Program-made: the position numbers and the translations under genes
Notes under the pieces: generated by a model
Seen by the model: the letters and a program-made list of their open reading frames with translations, nothing else
Database searches by the model: none
What the model was told of the DNA's origin: nothing
Shown here: positions 817 through 60,597 of the stretch, in pieces
Numbering within the stretch: position 1 is the stretch's first letter
Layout of the letters: every line of letters begins with the position of its first letter
From: Ascidiella aspersa
Taxonomy: Eukaryota
Length of the DNA: 64,000 nucleotides
Direction of reading: 5' to 3'
Assembly: GCA_963924565.1 (NCBI GenBank)
Contig: OZ004613.1
Span: 24,490,001-24,554,000, forward strand

Positions 817-3800
817 CCTTCTCCGTTGAATGAAAGCCTGCAACTTGACCTGGACATTTCGCAACCTGAACCACTGACAACTATAAGCGACGAACTGACA
901 CAAGATACTTCTCTCGTAAGTACACTGCTGGAGGTTTCTGGCAAACTGTCCCTTTCAGCAGCTAATTTTTTTTTCTACCCTTACTTTGGACTATTGCGCA
1001 GTTTATAAGCTCGAACTGTAACTAACAACGCTTTTTTCTTGAAATTATTTCTTAAACAGATTTAAATAAACGTTACGGCTTAGGGTTACCGATAGGGTTC
1101 TTACCGAATGTTAAGGACATTTATACAGTCTCAAGGCGACGCGTTTATTTTTTGGGGGGAGTGGAGGGGGTCTATTAAAAATTGGTGCAGAACAAACATG
1201 TCTATAGTTTAGTAATCCTGTTTCATTTTGTTTTGTAAAGATGAATGAAACGGCTAAGGGAAAGCTTATCCAAATAAGTTCACAAGCGACTTTAGGAAGA
1301 AAACTATAAGTTGATTTGTGTGTGTTGGGTGACGGCTAGCATTGTTCTTATAGCTTCGCTTTAGAATGCAAAGGTCAATCGAAAGTTAAACGTCGTATTC
1401 TCAACACTTTGCTCAACCATGCAATAACACACGATACTGGGGCGGGGGCCACGGTTGAGAAGCGCTGATCTAGCTTACTGAATTGGGAGTCGCGCGATGA
1501 GTTATATGGCACTGGTTGGGCTACATTCAATATTTTTTCTAAATCTAAGTATAACGTCCGCATAAATTGTACCTTTTCTGATTTCAATTTGTAATTGTCC
1601 AAACAAATGCTCAACAAAATTCCAAACTAAGATGCAAATTGCTTACAACGCGAGAGGCAGAAAAATAAACCAAACATGGCGAAAAGTTTGATGAAATTCA
1701 ATAGGTTCGCTGACTGAAAAGTTTAAAAGTCCTGTCTTTACTATTTTAACAGTACTACAATTAAATTCGTAATATTAATTCAAAACAGCACTCTTAAACA
1801 TCCATGTGTCAATCCAACGATAAAACGTCTTGTGCCGGTCTCTTGTAGTAGACAGTACAATCCCAATTTGTTGAAATATTGCGTTTTTTTCGTGAAGACC
1901 GACCCTGGCCCGCTTAAGAAGCTGAATCTTGCAAAGGAGCGGAACACCAAGACTCCAGATGAACCACTGCTCAAGTCAGGCTTCGTCACCAACCCCAAGC
2001 GAAAGTACAACTCTACCAAACAGAAAATATCCTTTGTTATCCAATAAATATGCTGGGATTCAATATATAAACTGCTGCTACCAGGCATAGTAATAAAAAT
2101 CAGAAACAACTTCTCTGGTAATTGTAATTGTTAACCAAAGTTTCGGCAACCTATTGAATTCTTCAGGGTGAAGGACACCGAACAGTTTACCAGAGAAGTT
2201 TTTTTTAATTATTATAAATATGCTATAAATAAGTTTAGTCTACATTGTGCGTGTTTAATTAACGTTTTTATTAAATGGAGTAGATTTTTATGGAGGATTT
2301 ATCAACACTTACAAATTTGCACTTTAACAAAACGAATTAAAAAAAGTAAAAAGGCTTTAGCTTTGTTTTTTGACTGAAGACTTATTATTGATTTCTGAGG
2401 GAATTACAACTTAAAAACATTTGTCTGCAATTTACCAAACTTTGTTCAGTCTGAATTGTGCCTGTGTTCAATTTACTTTTTTCAAATGGAATAGTTTTGT
2501 ATGAAGAATTTACAAACACTTACAAATTTTTACTTTTACAAAAAATATTTAAAAAAAATAAAAGGCTGTAGCTTTGTTGACTTATTAGTGATTTCTAAAG
2601 GAATTATAATTCAAAAACATTTGTCTAAAAACAATTTGACAAACGAAAATATTGTCACTGCAGAACTAATAATTATTTTTCAACGATTATTTAATGTTAA
2701 ACAATTTCACTAAAATTCAGTCCCGGTTGTTGCATTATCGAACTCGCGCGGATTTCTCCTTAACCTTGTTGCCATGGTGACGTGCACACCTCGAGCTCTG
2801 ACGTCATCTCGTCGGATGAGAGCGCGGAAGAAGAGCAGCGCAGTGCGACCTCTCGTGGCCGAAAGGCAAGCAAGAAGCTCAGCTTTTCAAGGAATACCTC
2901 GGTTGCGTGAGTCGAAATCGTTGTTTGTTTGTATTTTGATTTGTTTAAACCAATAACGAATTCTTTCTTTTAAAAAAAGTAAGAAAACATTTTGCATAAA
3001 AATAAATGTACGCTTGAACCAGCTAACTAAATGACTTAAAACGAAAAATATCCGCCATTTTCGGCTGCACAATACAGAACGTCAACAATGCTGCCACAAG
3101 CGTTCTTTTTTACATGTGTCCTAACTGTAAGGCGACCTTGTCTACTATCCGTAATGAACTTAATCAAAAACTATACTTTTTGCTTATTGGCTGAGCAGTT
3201 AAACTGTGGCCAGATTACTACATAGAAAGCACGAGTTACAATGAACTTAAATTAATTTGCCTACTAAGTGAATCAAAACTAGATCTCGATTACTTGGAAA
3301 ATCAAAAACCTCGCTCCAATACCACTTTCCATATGAAAATACCCTCGTGGTGGAACCACGCCATACTGACGAGATGTTGCTGGGACAAGGCCTGAATTTG
3401 TGAAAGCATCACTAACAGATCAAAAAATAATGACATTGCCACTTCGCTTTCTTGCATTAATATTACTTTACCTCCCTTAATTGGTTTTCTAATGATCTGT
3501 TCCCGGGTCCGTTGTGTTGTATCGCAGTAGTTTTCAGCCTTCAGTCCTCGATATATTTTTTGCCGGCAGGTCCAAGGTTTTTTGATTTGTGCATTCGGCA
3601 CACTATGTATTTTTGCTGAATTTGGCTTTGCGAGAACTCCGTCTCCTATTTCTGTATGTTAGGACTGATTGAAAGAGTCTGTTCAACACAAACGCTCCGG
3701 AAATAGTACATAACACTCTACTAAATCTAAAATAATTTTGGTCTAATGACAGACATTTAGAATCAGCTGAGCTTAGGCCAGGGATTCTTAATTTTTTTTA

Positions 3801-6800
3801 AAGCGGACCCGTACAGTTAGTTTTGCATCGCGTAGCCGTAGACCATGTTACGCAAGAAATTTTTAAAAATGACTGCATAAACTGACGTCACAATACAAAT
3901 AGACTTAAGAAATATGCTGATTTCGGGTCAAAAAATTTGAAAGTGAAATAGAGTCGAAATACGTTCAGTGCTAAAACGTTTTATTAAACTTTATTTAAAA
4001 ATATAATTACTTCTACACTAATTTTTACACTAATTTTTTAATTAGCCTTCATGGACCCCTAAAACTAGTTCATGGACCCCCAAGTGGTTCATTGGCTCCA
4101 GTTTAAAAACCCCTGGTTTGGCCGAAAACACAATAAAAAACTAAGGGATTTTGCTGGCCACCAGAAAAGATTAACTTAATCGTGGTGCCTTGTGCTAGAA
4201 TTTTGCTAAAAAAATTATTTTCCGTAAAATTTCCAATGTTCTACTAACCTTTCCAGATTACCTATAGAAACCCGTATACTACTTTGTAAGCGTTGTTTAT
4301 ACCCAGCCCTATTTGTTTCATTAAAGAATGGTACTTTCGAAATTCTGGTTACCTGTCCATAAAAGGATTTTTGCATTGTGCTGTGATATTTATCGTTAAA
4401 GGCTGATTGTGACGTTAAGCCTTGTCATATTATTATAGACTAAAGCATTCCCCTATTTGCAATTTATAGAATTGTAAAAAAGACAAATGTCTCTTAATAC
4501 TAGTTTTCTTGCATAGTTATAAGTTTAAAGATATTTAATTACGCCGAAACGTGTTTATTTGATCTTTAATCGAAAGTTTGCAGAGATAAAGTATATTTTA
4601 AAAGCAACACACAGTTATTTGAATAATAAAATGTAGGGTCCATGTTTGTATAGGATTGTTTAACATGATCTATTTTAAACCACTATAATTGAACAATTAG
4701 AGCAGTGTTTCTTAACCTTTTTTACTTAGGGGCGCACCTAGAAACGTATGAAAACGTGGCGGCGCGCCTTGCGAGCGAAGGGAACGCGAAATTTTTAAGG
4801 TGTACCTATATTTCTCTTAAATTGTTTGCATTTTTGTATTATATGGGTTTTATACTTGCATATCTTTAAATGGACTTCCAGCCTTTGAGAATAAAAACGT
4901 ATTTTTGCCCGTTAAGTCTTATTCCGATTATTTTTGGAATGATTTTGACATTTTTTCCATTCGCTCGCGGCGCACCAAACAGCCTTCCATGGCGCACCAG
5001 TGCGCCGCGGCGCACCGGTTGGGAAACGCTGAATTAGAGCAACCAACTACATAAACAAGATTCCTGTATTTAAAGACACCAATATTATTCCAATTTATTA
5101 AAATTACTTTCTCAAACCTAATTTTTAATATCGGTTTGTTTCAAAGGTAACACATTTGTGACAGTGTCTTGAACTAGGTAAATACTTTTAAGTTAACATC
5201 CACTTGTAATTTGGTATTTGTACATAATATGCTTTCAAGCAACAATGCAGTTGCTGACAAGCAGATATTGTTTCATTGCACAATAGAAAACATTGCGTAT
5301 TACCGCGGTATTGTCACATAAGTGCCCTGACTGATAATACCGTTAGCTCATTTTAAGCTTGCATGCTTTGAAATTGGATTACCAATGAAAAAAGGTTGCA
5401 AAAATAGGCATTTCTAGCATGTTAAGCTGTTAGGTTTTGCGAGTTGGAATATCAATACTAAACAACAGTAAGCAGCCTTCTTAAATATTTGTGTTACAAC
5501 GAACGTCCAACAAAGAACGAGACAGTTTGCCTCACGCTATCGTCTGACGCGACACGCCGTACGTCTGACGGCGTCTTGCGTCGAACAATGAAGGGAAACG
5601 TCTGGCCAACGTTTTGTCGTTTTACGCACGCGGCGCCCACAAACGAAAAATTTACCTCCCGGTTAATGACAAAAAAATTTTCCGTCAATCTTTAGCTTTG
5701 CGCAGAGGCGATATCATAGCCAATGAGGTTTATCCGAGGCGTGATTATTGCTAGTTGAAAACTATACCCAATACCCCGCCCTGACGACGTGAAAAACCGT
5801 CGGCTGTGGCAATTTCTGAAGGATTCTACGGAATTCTATCTTTGCTTAATCATTTTTGTTAACCAGCATTAGGAAACCAAGAAAGAAAGCGTTTACTTTC
5901 TGCTATACTAGGGAAGGGTGGGCAATTATTTTTTACAGTGAGCTGGGTCAAATTTAGGATCTTTAACATACACAGTATGGCGTCATACTGTGACCCTAAA
6001 AAACAATGAAACTTAAGAAACCTGTTATTACATCGCGAATGTACAACTAAAGTTTAATTTTTGTTCAGAAAATGCTAAGGCGTCGCACCAAGCGTCAAAA
6101 AATTGCCGCTATTTGGTTTAAAGTTCTTTAATTTACATTTTGTGACGCATTAGGCACAGATAAAATATAAGCGAACTACTCGATATATTGGCATTATTCA
6201 AGTTATATGGGCGGGCGTGTTGACCCACCAGCTGCAAGGTTGCATAAAAAAACTTAAAAATATAGTTTGAAGCATCAAAATGCTTTCAATGCGTTCAACA
6301 TTTTGAGATTTTCAGTTGCAGATGTGTCACTTACGATAGAATGGTCATGATACAAACACGGTATGGATTGGACGAAACACGAAATAGTTGTATAAACTAC
6401 TAAACTAGGTTATTAAAATAAGGGGAATCAGGGAGTTTTATCGAATTGAATTTTCGTTCATATTTTAAAGACAGAGTTCATTCGTTCTACGCGCAAAAAA
6501 TGCATTAAAAAATACCAGCGGGTCGTACTTTGCCCAATGTCTGTACTAAGATGATGGAAATTTTTAAAGATTCCTGCGAGTTCTATTTCAACTGTAATAA
6601 AAAAAATTTCAACTGTAATAAAAAAAAAAAATGTTTTAGATAACTTACAACGATGCTTTTAAGGTCAACAGTAGTTTCATCTTTTTAAAATAGTATATTT
6701 CATAGCCTCACTTACCATGTTGTTATACTAACTAACTGAAAACGTCATTAGCATTTTATTGTAGATTGGGTCTGGCACGAATGAAGTGCACTCCAATACA

Positions 6801-9800
6801 AAAACAAATATAAGTTTGGTGTGTAAAATTTTGACATTTTTGTCAGTTTGGCATGTGTTTGCAAATGACTGAAAATATCGGGGTTTGATTTTATTAACTT
6901 GTTGCAGTTACGAACGAGCCAAGCCAAGCAAGAAACGACACAAGAAGAAGGCAAAAGTACTATTAAAGGTACACTTCACTTGTATTTTTAATGTATTTCT
7001 GTGAAAAAAGAAAAAAGCTTTGATATATATATCTCTCTAAAGTTAAACCAATTAGCCTTTACTATATAGTGATACCCTAACTTTAGAGTTAGACGAACTT
7101 AAATGCTAATTAACTAATTTGAAGTTAAATTGTAAAGCTCCATTAACAGAAAATGAAAAAAAATAAGTCTTTGTATGAGCGTTTTGTTTGTTTGTTTGTT
7201 TATGTGATTCCGTTATTTTTACGTTCATAACTTTTTACCTCTTTTTAGGTATCTTACGTTGTTTTATTTTATTTGTATTGTTTTTAGGAAAGCAGCGACG
7301 AAGAAAATGATTGCGACGTTGACAGCTCGCCTGACGTTGAGTAAGAAAAAAATCATGTATTGCACTTTCAGTAGCTTGTATCAAATATCGGCCCTGTTGT
7401 GGCTTCTGGTATTTTCATAACGTTGTTGTCTTAAAGAAAAAATACTTTTGGTATTTTCTACTCGCCTATATTTTTAGATAAAAAATTGTCCAGCAGAATG
7501 TAAATAATTTAGGTATAAACAGGAGTGTCGCGTTTACGTTGGCCATCACGACGTTATGGACTAAAGCGCAGTAATAAATATGTGTATAATCGTTAAGTAG
7601 ACTATGAACGGATCTATAATATAGCTTGAATACTAACTGGTGATGATACTTGTACGTATCAAAACGTCTCTTCCTCCAGATAACATCGATTAACTTGACC
7701 TCATTAGCTTAGTTATTCAATGTGTATTACCTTGTTATTATAATATGTATTATATTTCGTTCAATACAAATGGTATGTGCTTCAAGAAAAATAATGATAA
7801 GTTAAAAATGCTTAAAATTGACCTCGCTTTTGTCTGTTCTGCTCAGCGACGACATCTCGCGGTTATTGCGAGACGTGGTGAAGTTGTACAGACGAAAGCG
7901 AATCAAGAAGAACCGCCCGGTCAAGCGAATCCACAAGGTCATCGCCAAACACAACTGTGACATCAAGGTCGTTTGGCAGCAGTTCACTAACTCAAGGTTG
8001 CTCAACTTTTATTTTTTTTTTAAAGCCCTAACGATTTGCAACTAATACTTTGTTGGTTATTAAAAAGGCGGAAAAGTATCTGTTTAAATAAGAAAATAAA
8101 AGCTAGGATATCGGTTTATGTTATAGTTAATTGACATGTTTAAATACAGTTTTTTATTATTTTCTGGATAATTTAATTGTCATATCCAAAATCCGAAAAA
8201 AATTGTCAAATTATATAAGTCTGTACGCTAAAATTATGCCACAATAACTGGTTTGGATGAGTTCAGGTTTAGACAGCCGCATTTTTATCAAAAAGACTGT
8301 GTCAATATCGGACAAAAATAAGTATAGGTAAATCCCACAATATTTTAACAGTCTTTAGTAAATTAAATTGTATATTCTCAATCGCCTCATGCAACATTTG
8401 CTGTCGCAGGGACGAAAACATGGCCAAGTTTTCGGAGAATTTCGAGAAAATGACGAAACGCCACAACGTCTTGACCAAGAAGCTCACCACAGTTGAGGGA
8501 GCGGCCAAGGTTTGCTTGGGGAAGATCAACCGACTTTTGAACGGCCTCTACACGGAGTCCATTGCAACGTAAGTTTACCATACGTATAGTGGTTACCGAA
8601 GCGACTGACCCCACATATGTGTGCACCAGGGCTTCTAAAGTTGTGGTCCATGGATCCTTCAGGGTCTATGCTGAATTATAAGATGTGTCCGCTTGACTTT
8701 TAAATATAAACAACATCAACGTCGGAATAAAACACAGTTCGGAATATAGGACTCAAATAGGACTGATACCTATTGTAATATAATATTAACCGGTATAAGT
8801 CCAAAACCCGTTTAAATGGCCAGATCCGGCCTATACAACATTTTACCTATCCTCCAAACCCCACCCCTAAGTACATCACTAACTCCCCTAATAATTCCAA
8901 CCCTAACCCCTAACATTACCCACTAATAACCCAAATTGGACCAAAAAATCCGGTGCCAAAACAGCGGCGCCCAAACGTCGACATCAAAACGACCGATAGA
9001 CCCATGGACGCCGTTCGTCACATACCCTCTCCCTGCAGTTTCAGGGATTATTCTGGTCATTTAGGACTTGTTGGACAGGTTAGATCTTATTCTGTCGTGG
9101 ATATTACTGTCTATTTGGCTTTATTTTGTGGTTGGTCTTAATACTATGATAATATAGGTTTTTCTCGTTGGGTTTTGTTACTTTTTAGGTCTATTGTGTG
9201 TTCCCCCTCAAACACATAGTTCATGGTCCATAAAGCAAGAAGTTTGGGACAGTCTTCTTTTGAATTTTCTAATATAGATCTGGGAATATTTTATATACCC
9301 TGCTCCGTATTTGAATATGAATGGTGTTCCACGGGCGAAAACAAAGTTGAGAAGCCCTGGAATAAACGCTTTACATTGATTGATGCGGAACTGGGCATCG
9401 CGTAAAATGGGTTAAACTTCTTAATGGTTAATATATGTGAGCTCACAGAAAATGTTACAGGTTTAACCTAATTTTGTTTCAATAATTGTAGTATTCGAAT
9501 GAATGGGGTTCGTTTATTTTGGGACACCCCGTACTTAAAACTCGACCCCGACTCGGCCAAAACGATCGGATTAATGACTGACGTCCCAATTGGTACGCTT
9601 GTCAATCTGTCAGCGCACGTAAGCCTGGCCCTGGGGCTAGCTTCACCGTAGCATCGCTCATCCTGTGTATGGGTAACGCCCCTATTATTACCTGTCCAGT
9701 CTCGTCCGCAGGTCACGAATATGTCGGGCTGTTTTTTGATGTTGTTTGTAATCAATGCGTTAATCTGTTTTAGAGAAAAATGCTTACAAACCTTTTTTGT

Positions 9801-55667: not shown

Positions 55668-58600
55668 TTACTGTCCCGAGGCTTGGTGACCAGAAACCGT
55701 TAATCGGCAGAAATTGTACACTTTACCGATCACCCCACTTACAATGTCGGAATAAATCAGTGGATTGAGAGCGCTGTTAATGGGCAATAGGACCCCAGCA
55801 CTAACAGCATACACAACCACTGGTAAACTAACCCCAGTCAGTTGAATAAAGGCCAATGTACAAAGTGGAACCCAGCAAGCAAAGTCGGTAAATACGAGGC
55901 GCGATATACGGCTTTGCATCTTTTTAGAACGCTTGCCAGACTTGCCAACGTTGTTAGTGCTTTTCCGGTAGATGACTAGGTAGCAAATGACCATGTAAAG
56001 AAAGAGGGCGAAATTAAGAAACATTATGAAAGCAGAATAACCCCACCCAGCATCGCCAACGTTTACAAAAATTCGTGGCATGCATACACTTGTTTCGCCG
56101 TAGTAACCTATGTCGCCCAATATAGGCAAGTAAGGGATTTTAGATTTAACAAATCTCTTTGTTTCGAACCAGGTCGATGAATTATGTTGTCCCATTCTGC
56201 TGGCTAGGGTACGCAATTCAGTTTTGGTAATCTGGTCAGTTTTGTAAAAGTAGTTTGGAAACCAAACACCAGAGGCAAAATAATCCTCCGAAATAAAAAG
56301 TGGAAGGGTGGAAATTAAGATGGCTAAAAGCCAGCAAGAGACAATTGCTATTCTTCCCCAAATAATTGTTAGTGTTCGAGTAATAAATGGTCGCATAATT
56401 GTAATAACCCGAAATGTGGTCATGGCTGTCATTATAAATACAGAGGTTTCTGTTGAGAGAACCACCAACGCCCCCAAACATGAACAAAATGCGCTTGTAC
56501 GCCACGGTTTATCATGGAAGCAATAGGACCCGGAGAACTGGGCGGCCTTAACACATACAAACAAAAGGTAAAGGCCCATGCAAAAATCGGAAAGTGACAA
56601 GTTAAGCACAAACAACGAGTTGTATTGCATCGCTACAGAAGGTTTATTCCAAGTGAGCATTTCCTTTGCTGTAGTTGCGAAAACCGCCGCGTTTCCAGCA
56701 ATAGACACCAGCGCCATGATCCAAAAAATAGCCTGAATAAACTTGTTTCCAATTAGCTCGTATTGCGACGAAAATATGGTGGCTTCACCATTATCCGGAG
56801 GACATTCGTCACTTCCGTCCGCGCAATCTCGCTTGCCATCCTCAACTTGGCTTTTGTCCACCGAAATTGGAGTTTTATTAAGACAATAGAATCGCGTGCT
56901 TGAACAAAGAGATTCCGCTTCATCCTCTGCGTTCTGGCAATCAATTAAGCCGTCGCACGTTCTGTCCACGTCTATGCTGACACTAGACCCAGACGTGCAG
57001 TAAAATCGCATCGTACAGTTTTTCTCGTCGAAACCGGGCGGACATTCATCATCGGAAAACGCCAGGACTTCTTTTTCACCGTTGCAATATCTCTCCCCAG
57101 TGTCCATGTACAACCTACAGCATATAACCTATTGGATCAATTGTAATTTTTCAATGTAATGGATTTAATTAATTACAGTTTTAAATGTAGTTGTAATGTA
57201 AATGAGGTAATTCATTCTGTGTAATTCCAATTGTAATTGTAATTTTGTCAAATATTTGCTCAATACATTGATATTGAGAAACTTGAAGTTTCAATGCCGA
57301 AATTTGTTATTGATGTAATTAATTACAATTTTTAATGTAATTTAAACATTTAAGGGAGAATTTGTAATTGTAATAAAATTAATGTAATTCATCCAACTCT
57401 CACCTACAGTGATCGTCGCAAAACACAGGCCTGTCTGGGCAAGTTTCGCATTCGTCTGAAAGGTCCTTACATTCTGGGCGACCATCGCACAACGTTGCTT
57501 GAATTTTGCCAAAAATGTTGTGGCAAGTGATAGTGGTCCTCCTGTAAAATTCGTATCCCCCGCACCGAGCAGTGTTGGCATTGTTTGTGCAATTCACAAA
57601 TTCGTTGCACATTCCAGCGGTTTCGTCCACGCATCCCAGATCCTCGTTGCAATAGAACTGACCAGGGGTACAGCGTGTTCTTGACGTTCCAAGTACTTCG
57701 TCGCAAACGGTTTGATCTGCGCAAAAGCACTCGTCGGAGACATCGTAGCAGTCTACAATACCATCGCAAACTTGCTTCGGCGAGATTATGAGCTTCTTGT
57801 CGAAACACTCGAAACAGCTCATCTTCCCGTCTACGAAGCACAGATCAGACGCGTCCGAGCAGTGCGAGATTTCGTCGTAGAGGTTTATCTGCGGCAGGAT
57901 GCAGACCGATCCCGAAAATCCCGTCGGGCATCTAAAGCCAAGATTGTTTTCACTTAGATCGCTCATGATTGAACAGGTATTATAGCCGAGGCAGAACTTG
58001 CGAGCGACTGTTACCTTCCTGTTATCGCACACAAAAGGCGTATGACACAAGTCGGTATCGCATATGCTCGATACGCATGCCCACTCAGGTTCTTTTACGC
58101 CTGGAGTGCCGTTAAAATACGTCTTAAAGGCTACAGGGTGGCAAATGGTCGTGGACCCGTTCATAGTGGTGGCAGTGTACTGCAGCATTTGATCTCTGGT
58201 CTTCACGTCAGGGCAATACATTGTCTGACAAAAGCAAGAAACTGAAAAACTGATGAACGAGGTACTACACTTTTCATCATCGCCGCTTTCACAGTCTAGC
58301 ACGCCGTCATTTATGTATATCAAGTCGATGCACTTCTGCTGCGAGTCGCAGTCGGATTCGTTGAATATACAGCCGCACCTTGCTTGGTTGCTTGTGCAGT
58401 TGCATGCATATTCATCGCTCCAATCACCGCAGTTATTAAAGCCATCGCAAAACTGATCCTTCCAAATGCAAGCAGCGTCGGGCGGGCAAGCGTCTGTTGT
58501 ATTTTGTTGGCAACATTGCGCCTTACCATTAGGGCACACGCAATCGATTTCATCGCTCCCGTCACCGCAATCATTAACGCCATCGCAAACGTTAGTACTC

Positions 58601-60597
58601 TTAACGCAGGAAGGTTGGAGTCCGCAATCGTCACAGGGACAACGGAAGTCGTTTTCCGGACAAATACAATCTCTTTCATCGCTCCAATCTCCACAATCAT
58701 TTTCCAGATTACAGCGCTTTTCCTCTTTCACACTTCCAGCATAGCAAAGCGTTGGAGTTTTAAACGAACTACAGTCGCAATGGAAGTATAAACAGTTACG
58801 TTCATCGCTCCAATCTCCACAGTCATTGACGCGGTCGCACACCTTGCTTTGTTCCACGCAACCCGCATAGTTAGTACAGTTCGCACCTAACCACGAATAG
58901 CAATCGCATTGAAATAAGTCCCACGGACAAGAGTAGCACCATTGCTCATCACTCCAATCGCCACAGTCATTTTCGCCGTCACATTCTATGGCGTACAAGG
59001 ATGCGAGGTAGTTCCCTGTACAAGTACTGTCGTTCGCACATGAGCAAACGAACCAATAATCTGGCCAGTAACAATCCACTTCGTCGCTTCCATCAACGCA
59101 ATCTTTGTAACCGTCACAGGCTTGCCATGCGTCTATGCACCAAGCATCACCAGCACAAGAATCGGATCCAAAACGTGCGCACTTACATTCAAACTTGTGT
59201 ACACACGTGCACATACGCTCGTCCGAGTGATCGGAACAATCATAAAACCCGTCGCATACTTTGCGCGTCTGCACGTTCGCAACTTTGCCAGAGCAAGTCT
59301 GGCCTTTGGCGAAACAGTCGCATATAAACACTTCAGAAGCGAATGTGCAGTTTATTTCATCACTAAAATCACCGCAATCGTCAATTGCGTCGCACACTTT
59401 CAAATTGGTATCTAAACAGCCAGGTGAAGTGGCGCACCCGTCTTGGTTGCAATGGCACTTGAATTGGCCAACGCCGCATTGACAGTTAACCTCATCGCTC
59501 CAATCGCCACAGTCGTTATCACGGTTGCACACCAACTCCCAAGGCACGTAAACAGGAAGTCTAGACTCACATGATCCGTTTCGTGCGCACGCGCAATAGA
59601 ATTGAATGCCAGCGAATTCGCATTCAAGTTCGTCGCTTCCGTCAACACAGTCGTTGATCCCATCGCATTTAGATGCCAACGGTATGCAACTAGTTGGATC
59701 GTGACATTTGTCGTTCACGTAGCGACAACCGCAAGAAAATTCTCCGGCACATTGACAGTCGGCTTCGTCGCTCCCATCGGAACAATCGCTTTTCCCGTCA
59801 CAGGTCTGATGCTCCAAGATGCACACTTCCGGGTAGGCGCACGTGTTGTTATTTTGGCACGCACAGCGAAACGTTCCACTTGCACAAGTGCAGTTGAGCT
59901 CGTCTGTGCCGTCCATGCAATCGAAACGACCGTTGCAAATTTCACTCTCTTTATAGCACCCCTGTCCATAATGGCAGTTCTGGGTTCTTAGTGGGCATCC
60001 GCATTTATATTCAGACTCTTCACAAAGACAGTATTTTTCGTCCGATCCGTTTGGACAATCTTCAATGTAGTTGCAAAGCGACGATTGCGGAATTACAGTT
60101 TGATCTGCATCGCTGAATCCATTAGCACTGAGGTAAGGCGATAGGTCTTCGGTTCTTGGTAGACATGAACATGGAATGGTTTGTTGCTCTGGGTGTGTTC
60201 TAATTGTGTTGCACAATTCTGTTGAAATAAACATTTACAGCGATTTTAAAATCTACCGTTAGCATGAGAATTGATATTTTGCAGGGCAGGAATTACAATA
60301 GCAGTAAATTTAAAAGCGTCATTGCGCAAAAAGTTATGTTTGATTTTAGAACTAAATAAAGGTATAGCTTGATCATGAAAAAGAGCGATTTCTATCTATT
60401 AATTAAATGATGTTAACTTTGCAATTCATTGTCAAGCTACATTACAGATCCGTGCAAAGTGTACCCAAATAAAGGTAAATTTACAAAAAAGATTTTGACT
60501 CACCAAAGTATTGATACCAAAGTGCGTCATGGTACCCTTCACTTTTGAAAACCTGACCTCCAAATATCAGCAGAAACATAAAAACTACGGATTGCAT
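55668..60597 (-). CDS. LDL-receptor class A repeat-rich rhodopsin-family GPCR (GRL101/RXFP-related 7TM, no leucine-rich repeats); ~1451 aa
   Basis: Exon 60597-60504 encodes signal peptide MQSVVFMFLLIFGGQVFKSEG; exon 60218-57404 is 2815 nt of LDLa repeats; exon 57114-55668 encodes the last LDLa modules and the 7TM. About 20 CDGxxDCxDxSDE-type motifs. LGR-type TM motifs: GN (TM1), NLSLSDFCMGLYL (TM2), WRTSAFC, VFTDFACWVP (TM6), LPINSALNPLIY (TM7). Confidence 0.92.
57121..57401. mobile_element. hAT-like MITE (TGTAAT/AATTAC-rich) forming almost all of GPCR intron 2
   Basis: Perfect 8-bp direct repeat ACCTACAG at 57113-57120 and 57402-57409. Degenerate terminal inverted repeats: ttggatcaatt near the left end and aattcatccaa near the right end. 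The interior is made of TGTAAT(T) units. Confidence 0.7.

Follow-up and report, generated by a model that had tools for sequence, protein, structure and literature searches.

In algae, introners built from elements with terminal inverted repeats (TIRs) recruit splice sites from their target-site duplications (TSDs), and some of them co-opt both sites from the place of insertion (PMC9860276; review PMC11282704). Introners of the miniature inverted-repeat transposable element (MITE) type are found in Micromonas and Aureococcus, and in the Florenciella type both splice sites are co-opted (Gozashti et al. 2022, PMC9860276; PMC11282704). MITE-derived non-canonical introns have been described in the tunicate Fritillaria borealis (PMC11282704), and introners have been reported in the ascidian Styela clava (PMC12130899). 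We describe here an intron in a receptor gene of the ascidian Ascidiella aspersa, located in a 64,000-nt stretch of contig OZ004613.1 (positions 24,490,001 to 24,554,000, called hereafter the window). It very likely arose when a MITE of the hAT superfamily inserted into a coding exon, the duplicated target providing the GT and AG that make the element spliceable. To our knowledge, well-documented intron gains in animals are few.

Similarly to the MITE-type introners of Micromonas and Aureococcus, the window MITE is a cut-and-paste, TIR-bearing, non-coding element placed in a coding exon, with the TSD at the exon-intron junctions, and splicing would remove the element together with one duplicate, leaving the mRNA unchanged. 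The target, and not the element, is the source of both splice dinucleotides, which is also true of the Florenciella type. In contrast to the MITE-type introners, which count hundreds to thousands of insertions, a single insertion event is seen here, with no genic bias in the sample of copies (0/28), the element itself brings no splice site, and the host is an animal. With the tunicate MITE introns (Fritillaria, Styela), the case shares the subphylum and a TIR- and TSD-bearing insertion at a lineage-specific intron position. Unlike the AG-AC and AG-AT boundaries of Fritillaria, those found here are canonical GT-AG, the element belongs to a hAT family with an 8-bp TSD, and the case is single.

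An interrupted receptor gene

The host gene, on the minus strand, encodes in 1,425 codons a G-protein-coupled receptor (GPCR) with an array of LDLa modules. Its sole break is a 289-nt GT...AG interval, and its parts, in the direction of transcription, are listed below.

57404..60234, minus strand: exon 1, an open frame of 943 codons followed by 2 nt (AG) of a split Arg codon, with the LDLa array (from the list of open reading frames, ORFs)
57402..57409, minus strand: left TSD copy CTGTAGGT, whose last two bases are the donor GT (57403-57402) and which directly abuts the first base of the MITE, as in other family members
57115..57403, minus strand: predicted intron, 289 nt, GTGAGA...CTGTAG, whose removal gives the same reading as the uninterrupted paralog L034
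57132..57401, minus strand: MITE body, 270 nt, with GAGAG for the consensus CAGAG and without the last 5 nt (CTCTG) of the right terminus (from the genome search and family alignment)
57384..57401, minus strand: left TIR GAGAGTTGGATGAATTAC, matching the consensus CAGAGTTGGATCAATTAC
57132..57142, minus strand: truncated right TIR AATTGATCCAA, where the consensus ends AATTGATCCAACTCTG; CCAATAGG is common to the copy in paralog L035
57121..57131, minus strand: 11-nt filler TAGGTTATATG between CCAA and the second CTGTAGGT, a partial duplicate of the TSD tail and downstream flank
57113..57120, minus strand: right copy of CTGTAGGT, which supplies the in-frame acceptor AG (57116-57115) and is ATGTAGGT in sample X2
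55668..57114, minus strand: exon 2, beginning with the final base of the Arg codon, followed by 481 codons and a stop, with LDLa modules and a rhodopsin-type seven-transmembrane (7TM) region (from the ORF list)

On the minus strand the 8-mer CTGTAGGT is present twice, at 57409-57402 and at 57120-57113. The strand reads TGC GAC GAT CAC TGT AG, then gtgagagttggatgaattac ... caattgatccaataggttatatgctgtag, then G TTG TAC ATG GAC. The boundaries are canonical GT-AG, with a consensus-like donor (TAG/GTGAGA) and an acceptor TTATATGCTGTAG followed by G. Joined, the reading GAT CAC TGT AG/G TTG TAC ATG GAC gives D H C R L Y M D; with the intron retained, the frame meets a TGA at 57402-57400. Excision in silico of the element and one TSD copy produced a stop-free span of 985 aa within the locus, containing the C-R-L-Y-M-D of the uninterrupted L034. 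Exact recurrence of an 8-mer at any fixed spacing is rare (about 2.5 positions per 64 kb), and chance is excluded for this pair by paralogs in which the codon bears the 8-mer only once.

The initial annotation had proposed that two identical 8-bp copies bracket a 281-bp insert and supply both splice sites. The essential part of this proposal is upheld: the GT comes from the left and the AG from the right target-site sequence, and the empty-site paralogs described below hold a single 8-mer. Identity of the two copies holds for the window sequence and fails for the X2 allele, where the second 8-mer is ATGTAGGT. Likewise, the 289-nt interval stands as insert plus one TSD copy, but the 281-bp insert divides into the 270-nt MITE body and the 11-nt filler. 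The insertion was seen in DNA contigs of two samples and is therefore not a rare gene-breaking allele. Folding of the intron RNA that would bring the splice sites together was no better than in shuffled sequences (z=-0.51).

The exons were searched separately, by reference, and their flanks were concatenated only for paralog alignment. Domain searches returned Ldl_recept_a for exon 1 (five reported stretches, E=1e-50) and 7tm_1 (E=1.9e-18) plus Ldl_recept_a for exon 2; no leucine-rich repeat (LRR) match was found by this search in the exons, which fuse an LDLa array to a rhodopsin-type 7TM region. The gene is of the ascidian LDLRR-GPCR type described in Ciona (PMC2396169), in which LDL-A tandem repeats are joined to a relaxin-receptor-like 7TM region without LRRs (Kamesh et al. 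2008, PMC2396169). It resembles these receptors in the fusion of an LDLa array to a rhodopsin-type 7TM region and in having ascidian proteins as closest relatives. Ciona, Clavelina and Styela provide the nearest database proteins; comparison of exon 1 with the protein collection yielded only distant ascidian relatives at 38-45% identity, with neither a model of this gene nor an annotated protein of the species among them. In contrast to the 14 members confirmed in Ciona (PMC2396169), the present genome holds at least 415 candidates, and the ectodomain is far longer here, exon 1 alone having 943 codons, whereas the Ciona members have 1-10 LDL-A repeats (PMC2396169). Most ESTs of the Ciona receptors were derived from blood cells (PMC2396169). 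Among the 89 candidates that were scored, 82 have open frames of more than 600 aa.

The element family and the empty sites

The insert was used to search the genome (308 Mb, 75 contigs), and 40 of 320 first-look candidates were scored. Dispersed copies, as expected of a transposon, were indeed found: the 40 scored copies are 76-86% identical to the insert and are spread over all large contigs. An alignment of 19 full copies with their flanks gave the family consensus CAGAGTTGGATCAATT...AATTGATCCAACTCTG (longer form CAGAGTTGGATCAATTACATTAATTCAGTT ... CAATTGATCCAACTCTG), with CAGAG/CTCTG termini, AATTACA-type subterminal repeats and no ORF. Family length is about 270-300 bp (consensus about 275 bp). 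The TIRs of the insert, described earlier as degenerate, are remnants that match this consensus, GAGAGTTGGATGAATTAC on the left and AATTGATCCAA on the right, the latter without its last 5 nt.

Perfect 8-bp TSDs flank copies L006 (ATATGCAG), L014 (CTATACAC), L027 (GTGCGCAG) and L030 (GTTGCAAC), and most other full copies have TSDs differing at one or two bases. Eight family TSDs are clearly readable; A occupies position 7 in all eight, and T position 2 in seven. A preference for nTnnnnAn duplications is known for hAT elements. Because of its consensus termini and its 8-bp nTnnnnAn duplications, the family is of the hAT type, and it consists of several hundred dispersed MITE copies. A central TA, which the initial annotation had taken as the hAT signature, is not a feature of the TSDs of this family, whose hallmark is nTnnnnAn, and the third TSD quoted in its favour, GTTTACGC (pair 22661/26389), has no TIRs at its inner edges.

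The 19-nt left terminus had 157 genome matches with at most one mismatch, against none in a reversed control. Two TIR matches lie, by coordinates only, 260-280 nt from Dimer_Tnp_hAT matches in the same relative orientation:

C3:30886391 with C3:30886669-30886902: TIR and hAT domain, the domain inside a 659-aa open frame (locus C3:30886391-30889343), by coordinates
C1:7249518 with C1:7249053-7249259: TIR and hAT domain (locus C1:7249053-7249536), by coordinates

On these coordinates, such loci are likely to hold a candidate for the autonomous hAT parent of the MITE family. The family thus resembles hAT-superfamily MITEs by its 8-bp nTnnnnAn TSD, its CAGAG...CTCTG termini, its size of about 275 bp, its absence of ORF and its TIR placed, by coordinates, beside hAT transposase domains at two loci. 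Unlike them, the window copy has lost its right terminus and has a changed first base, and can no longer be a transposase substrate. In the DNA runs, contig word depth at 57190-57360 was 2,500-6,900, versus 50-160 in the flanks, a rise of about 50- to 100-fold that fits a repeat present in many copies.

Five paralogs are 90-95% identical to the host gene in exon 2. In L034 (contig C6) and in L033 and L032 (contig C3), the 150 nt that end exon 1 run directly into the 150 nt that begin exon 2. The site reads ...GACCCCTGTAGGTTGTATATGG (CCCCTGTAGGTTGTATATGG) in L034 and ...GACCCATGTAGGTCGTATTTGG (CCCATGTAGGTCGTATTTGG) in L033 and L032, in each case uninterrupted and with exactly one copy of the 8-mer. 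These three genes are true empty sites. L036 is also uninterrupted at the site, as are the distant paralogs L037-L043, in which the Arg is encoded by CGC or CGA. Therefore, the AGG codon that makes TAG/GT arose within the subclade. Nearly all of the 89 scored paralogs are uninterrupted, in agreement with the lineage-specific gain first put forward for this gene.

In the aligned 150-nt segments, L032 (G000:C3:35366317-35370744) and L033 share 97-100% identity. The frame of L032 is lost about 35 codons upstream of the homologous junction, leaving an open frame of 511 aa versus 1401 aa in L033; L032 probably represents either a young pseudogene copy or a fault of the assembly. Of the five closest paralogs, three (L035, L033 and L032) are clustered within 32 kb at C3:35337249-35369244, L035 in the opposite orientation to its two neighbours. 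Dispersed copies are found on C7 (the window gene) and on C6 (L034), and the subfamily has thus spread in tandem as well as between chromosomes.

History of the insertion and of its junctions

Paralog L035 (C3:35337249-35338976, also fetched as L002) has the same element as the window gene, at the same site and in the same orientation, and the two copies share derived substitutions and the aberrant right end CCAATAGG. Divergence between the two intron copies is K=0.17 (275 aligned positions, 26 gapped columns), or about 0.19 as calculated from 83% BLAST identity, and the synonymous divergence (dS) of exon 2 between the same genes is 0.19. Since intron K equals exon dS, the element has been present since the window and L035 genes separated.

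L035 is closest to its intronless neighbours L032 and L033 (dS 0.11-0.14). The maximum likelihood tree (2.6 kb) was (L036,(L034,(window,(L035,(L032,L033))))), with support of 100/100 for the group of L035, L032 and L033 and of 89/89 for the node excluding L034. Grouping the two intron-bearing genes in one clade was rejected by the approximately unbiased (AU) test (p=9e-6), and quartet sites were against it. Among quartet-informative sites, 61 supported the split of window and L034 from L035 and L033, versus 15 and 9 for the other two, including sites within 24-32 nt of either intron edge. Gene conversion as the source of the intron in L035 was not supported, the L035 flanks being L033-like to within 24 nt on both sides. 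On this tree the simplest history would be one gain after the split of L034, followed by one exact loss in the ancestor of L032 and L033. Such a loss could have occurred via deletion between the 8-bp repeats, conversion from an intronless paralog, or a cDNA, among which the data do not discriminate.

Over the time in which the intron diverged by some 17-19% and acquired many indels, neither gene lost the open frame of either exon. In exon 2 the ratio of non-synonymous to synonymous divergence (dN/dS) is 0.19 between the window gene and L035, 0.14-0.17 between the window gene and the other close paralogs, and about 0.12 on the window gene's own branch, as determined by three-taxon arithmetic. 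Because intron K (0.17-0.19) equals exon dS (0.19) while dN/dS is 0.14-0.19, the exon downstream of the insert stayed under selection, and this speaks indirectly for splicing. Both genes also keep a frame-preserving GT...AG pair despite an 11-nt difference at their 3' ends; in L035 the donor is TTG/GTAAGA and the acceptor CCAATAG/G ATG TTG, one codon longer. Splicing at these GT and AG sites is predicted from frame and selection.

Donor position +3 corresponds to the first base of the element, and it has changed from C to a purine in both genes, G in the window and A in L035. The change moved GTCAGA toward the GTRAGT consensus. A mutation of the terminal C to G giving a stronger donor had been suspected from the window sequence alone, and the family bears it out, the consensus being CAGAG, the window copy GAGAG (GTGAGA) and the paralog copy AAGAG (GTAAGA).

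The 3' junction has a more complex structure. The last five bases of the element (CTCTG) are missing in both the window and L035 copies, and the 11-nt filler of the window resembles the empty-site flank TAGGTTGTATATG of L034. A short duplication of TSD and flank, with a loss of 8 nt (CTCTG plus CTG), has remodelled the junction, possibly during repair after an abortive cut at the right end. The second 8-mer may be either the original TSD copy, preceded by the 11-nt filler, or a duplicate of the TAGGT remnant beside CCAA. Under either history, the acceptor AG derives from target-site sequence.

The X2 allele, rebuilt in a script from its listed differences, departs from the window at 57108-57143 by 57108 G>A, 57120 G>T, 57131 A>T, 57143 G>A and an AT inserted behind 57121. 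The 3' end of the intron is thus polymorphic in length (289 nt versus 291 nt in X2). In X2 the stretch CCAAAAGGTTATATATGATGTAGGTTGTATATGG forms a repeat AGGTT[A/G]TATATG with a period of 16 nt, matching at 11/12 positions.

Origin of the intron

The insertion, its empty sites and the selection on its exons are most readily brought together as follows. Transposase would have inserted a non-autonomous hAT MITE of about 275 bp into a single long coding exon at CTGTAGGT, that is, at the Cys-Arg codons TGT AGG plus T. The 8-bp duplication would then have placed AG/GT on both sides, the left GT serving as donor and the right AG as acceptor. Splicing would take out the element and one duplicate, so that the mRNA equals that of the uninterrupted gene. 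Later tuning would have replaced the first base of the element (C to purine, giving GTGAGA in the window and GTAAGA in the paralog). The right terminus CTCTG would have been lost, which would also have immobilised the element, and the short duplication of TSD and flank would have arisen on the 3' side. With gene duplication, the intron would have been kept in the window gene (C7) and in L035 (C3) and precisely lost in the L032/L033 lineage. We consider this origin, a hAT MITE made spliceable by its own target duplication, highly probable. The element family, its insertion and TSD, the empty sites, the gene tree and the selection on the exons are observed, and from them splicing at these sites, the sequence of changes on the 3' side and the way in which the intron was lost are inferred.

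Several observations weigh against it. The window target has T at position 2 but G instead of A at position 7, and is thus off-consensus for nTnnnnAn. The right end has no clean junction between element and TSD, and the second 8-mer may be a secondary copy. A cryptic AG is present at 57130-57129, 14 nt upstream of the in-frame acceptor; its use adds 14 nt and shifts the frame, so that production of the receptor requires the downstream AG. Of the single RNA run of the species (X3), about 6% was read and no read fell on 56700-57900, which is no test in either direction. Finally, an ATG occurs two codons into exon 2 (codon 3), and on DNA alone a separate downstream product may start there.

These last two points bear on the alternative that the insertion simply splits the gene and is left unspliced. 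Translation of exon 1 would then end at the TGA at 57402-57400 and yield a secreted LDLa-array protein, and exon 2 would have its own expression from that ATG, under a promoter within or close to the MITE; or else the whole gene would be in decay. In favour of this, the part of X3 that was read contains no read across the junction, and exon 2 has an ATG at codon 3. However, the insertion is old (K about 0.17-0.19 between paralog copies), yet both exons are open, and dN/dS in exon 2 is low (0.14-0.19, and about 0.12 on the window gene's own branch). Moreover, a frame-compatible GT...AG was kept in both paralogs despite the indels at the 3' end, donor position +3 improved in both, and a product from that ATG would have no signal peptide before about 130 aa of disulfide-rich LDLa modules. 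A split gene is for these reasons unlikely. It is extremely improbable that an older intron at this codon was colonised by the MITE and that the uninterrupted paralogs all lost it. Precise loss does happen in this gene family, as at least one (L032/L033) is needed anyway, but the intron is made up of the element, one TSD copy and the 11-nt flank duplicate, with no other intron sequence left, and the left TSD abuts the first base of the element exactly. The site is uninterrupted in L034, L036 and L037-L043, as it is in nearly all of the 89 scored paralogs, and distant paralogs do not have AGG at the codon.

Whether the family behaves as an introner, routinely creating introns across many genes, is a separate question, raised conditionally in the initial annotation. 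Introners reported for the ascidian Styela clava (PMC12130899) give it some plausibility, and a pattern search found one more copy preceded by AGGT and starting GTAAGT, at C9:19243305. Against this stands the behaviour of the other copies: none of 28 regained a long ORF after removal of the element and 8 bp, the best reaching 57 aa on its shorter side, which is typical of non-coding DNA. Their TSDs lack AGGT, and the family preference for A at TSD position 7 works against NNNNAGGT targets. As neither splice site is provided by the element, introns can form only at such targets. Genome-wide, the pattern of AGGT plus terminus returned only the present event, the L035 copy and one further lead. 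An introner is thus very unlikely, and the family is not a genome-wide intron factory; the intron stems from one insertion of an ordinary hAT MITE. The lead, at C9:19243305-19243326, is a family left terminus preceded by AGGT with a GTAAGTG start, AGGTAAGTGTTGGATCAAGTAC (AGGTAAGTG...); it could be a second donor-like junction.

Other MITE-like elements in the window were the following:

319-712: a 378-bp MITE of a different family, with TSD CATTACCT and TIRs CAGTGGTCGGCAAACT / CAGTGGTTGGCAAACT
4695-5039: a 329-bp element with AATTAGAG on both sides and imperfect TIRs CAGTGTTTC / CAGCGTTTCC

The case is a very clean example of a known route to introns; it leaves the general picture of intron origin unchanged and adds no new system. 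It shows that a duplicated target can give both splice sites without contribution from the element. As a filled site, empty sites, the source family, donor tuning and a probable later exact loss are found in one genome, it offers a compact test and teaching case for the AG/GT route. A more speculative idea, which we regard as doubtful, is that of a reversible intron cycle, in which MITEs landing in NNNNAGGT of intronless, fast-duplicating receptor genes become introns at once, and the 8-bp repeats offer a route to exact loss. Such a cycle would explain sister paralogs that differ only by the presence or absence of the intron. If true and recurrent, it would make ascidian MITEs a low-rate, ongoing source of intron gain and precise loss in an animal.

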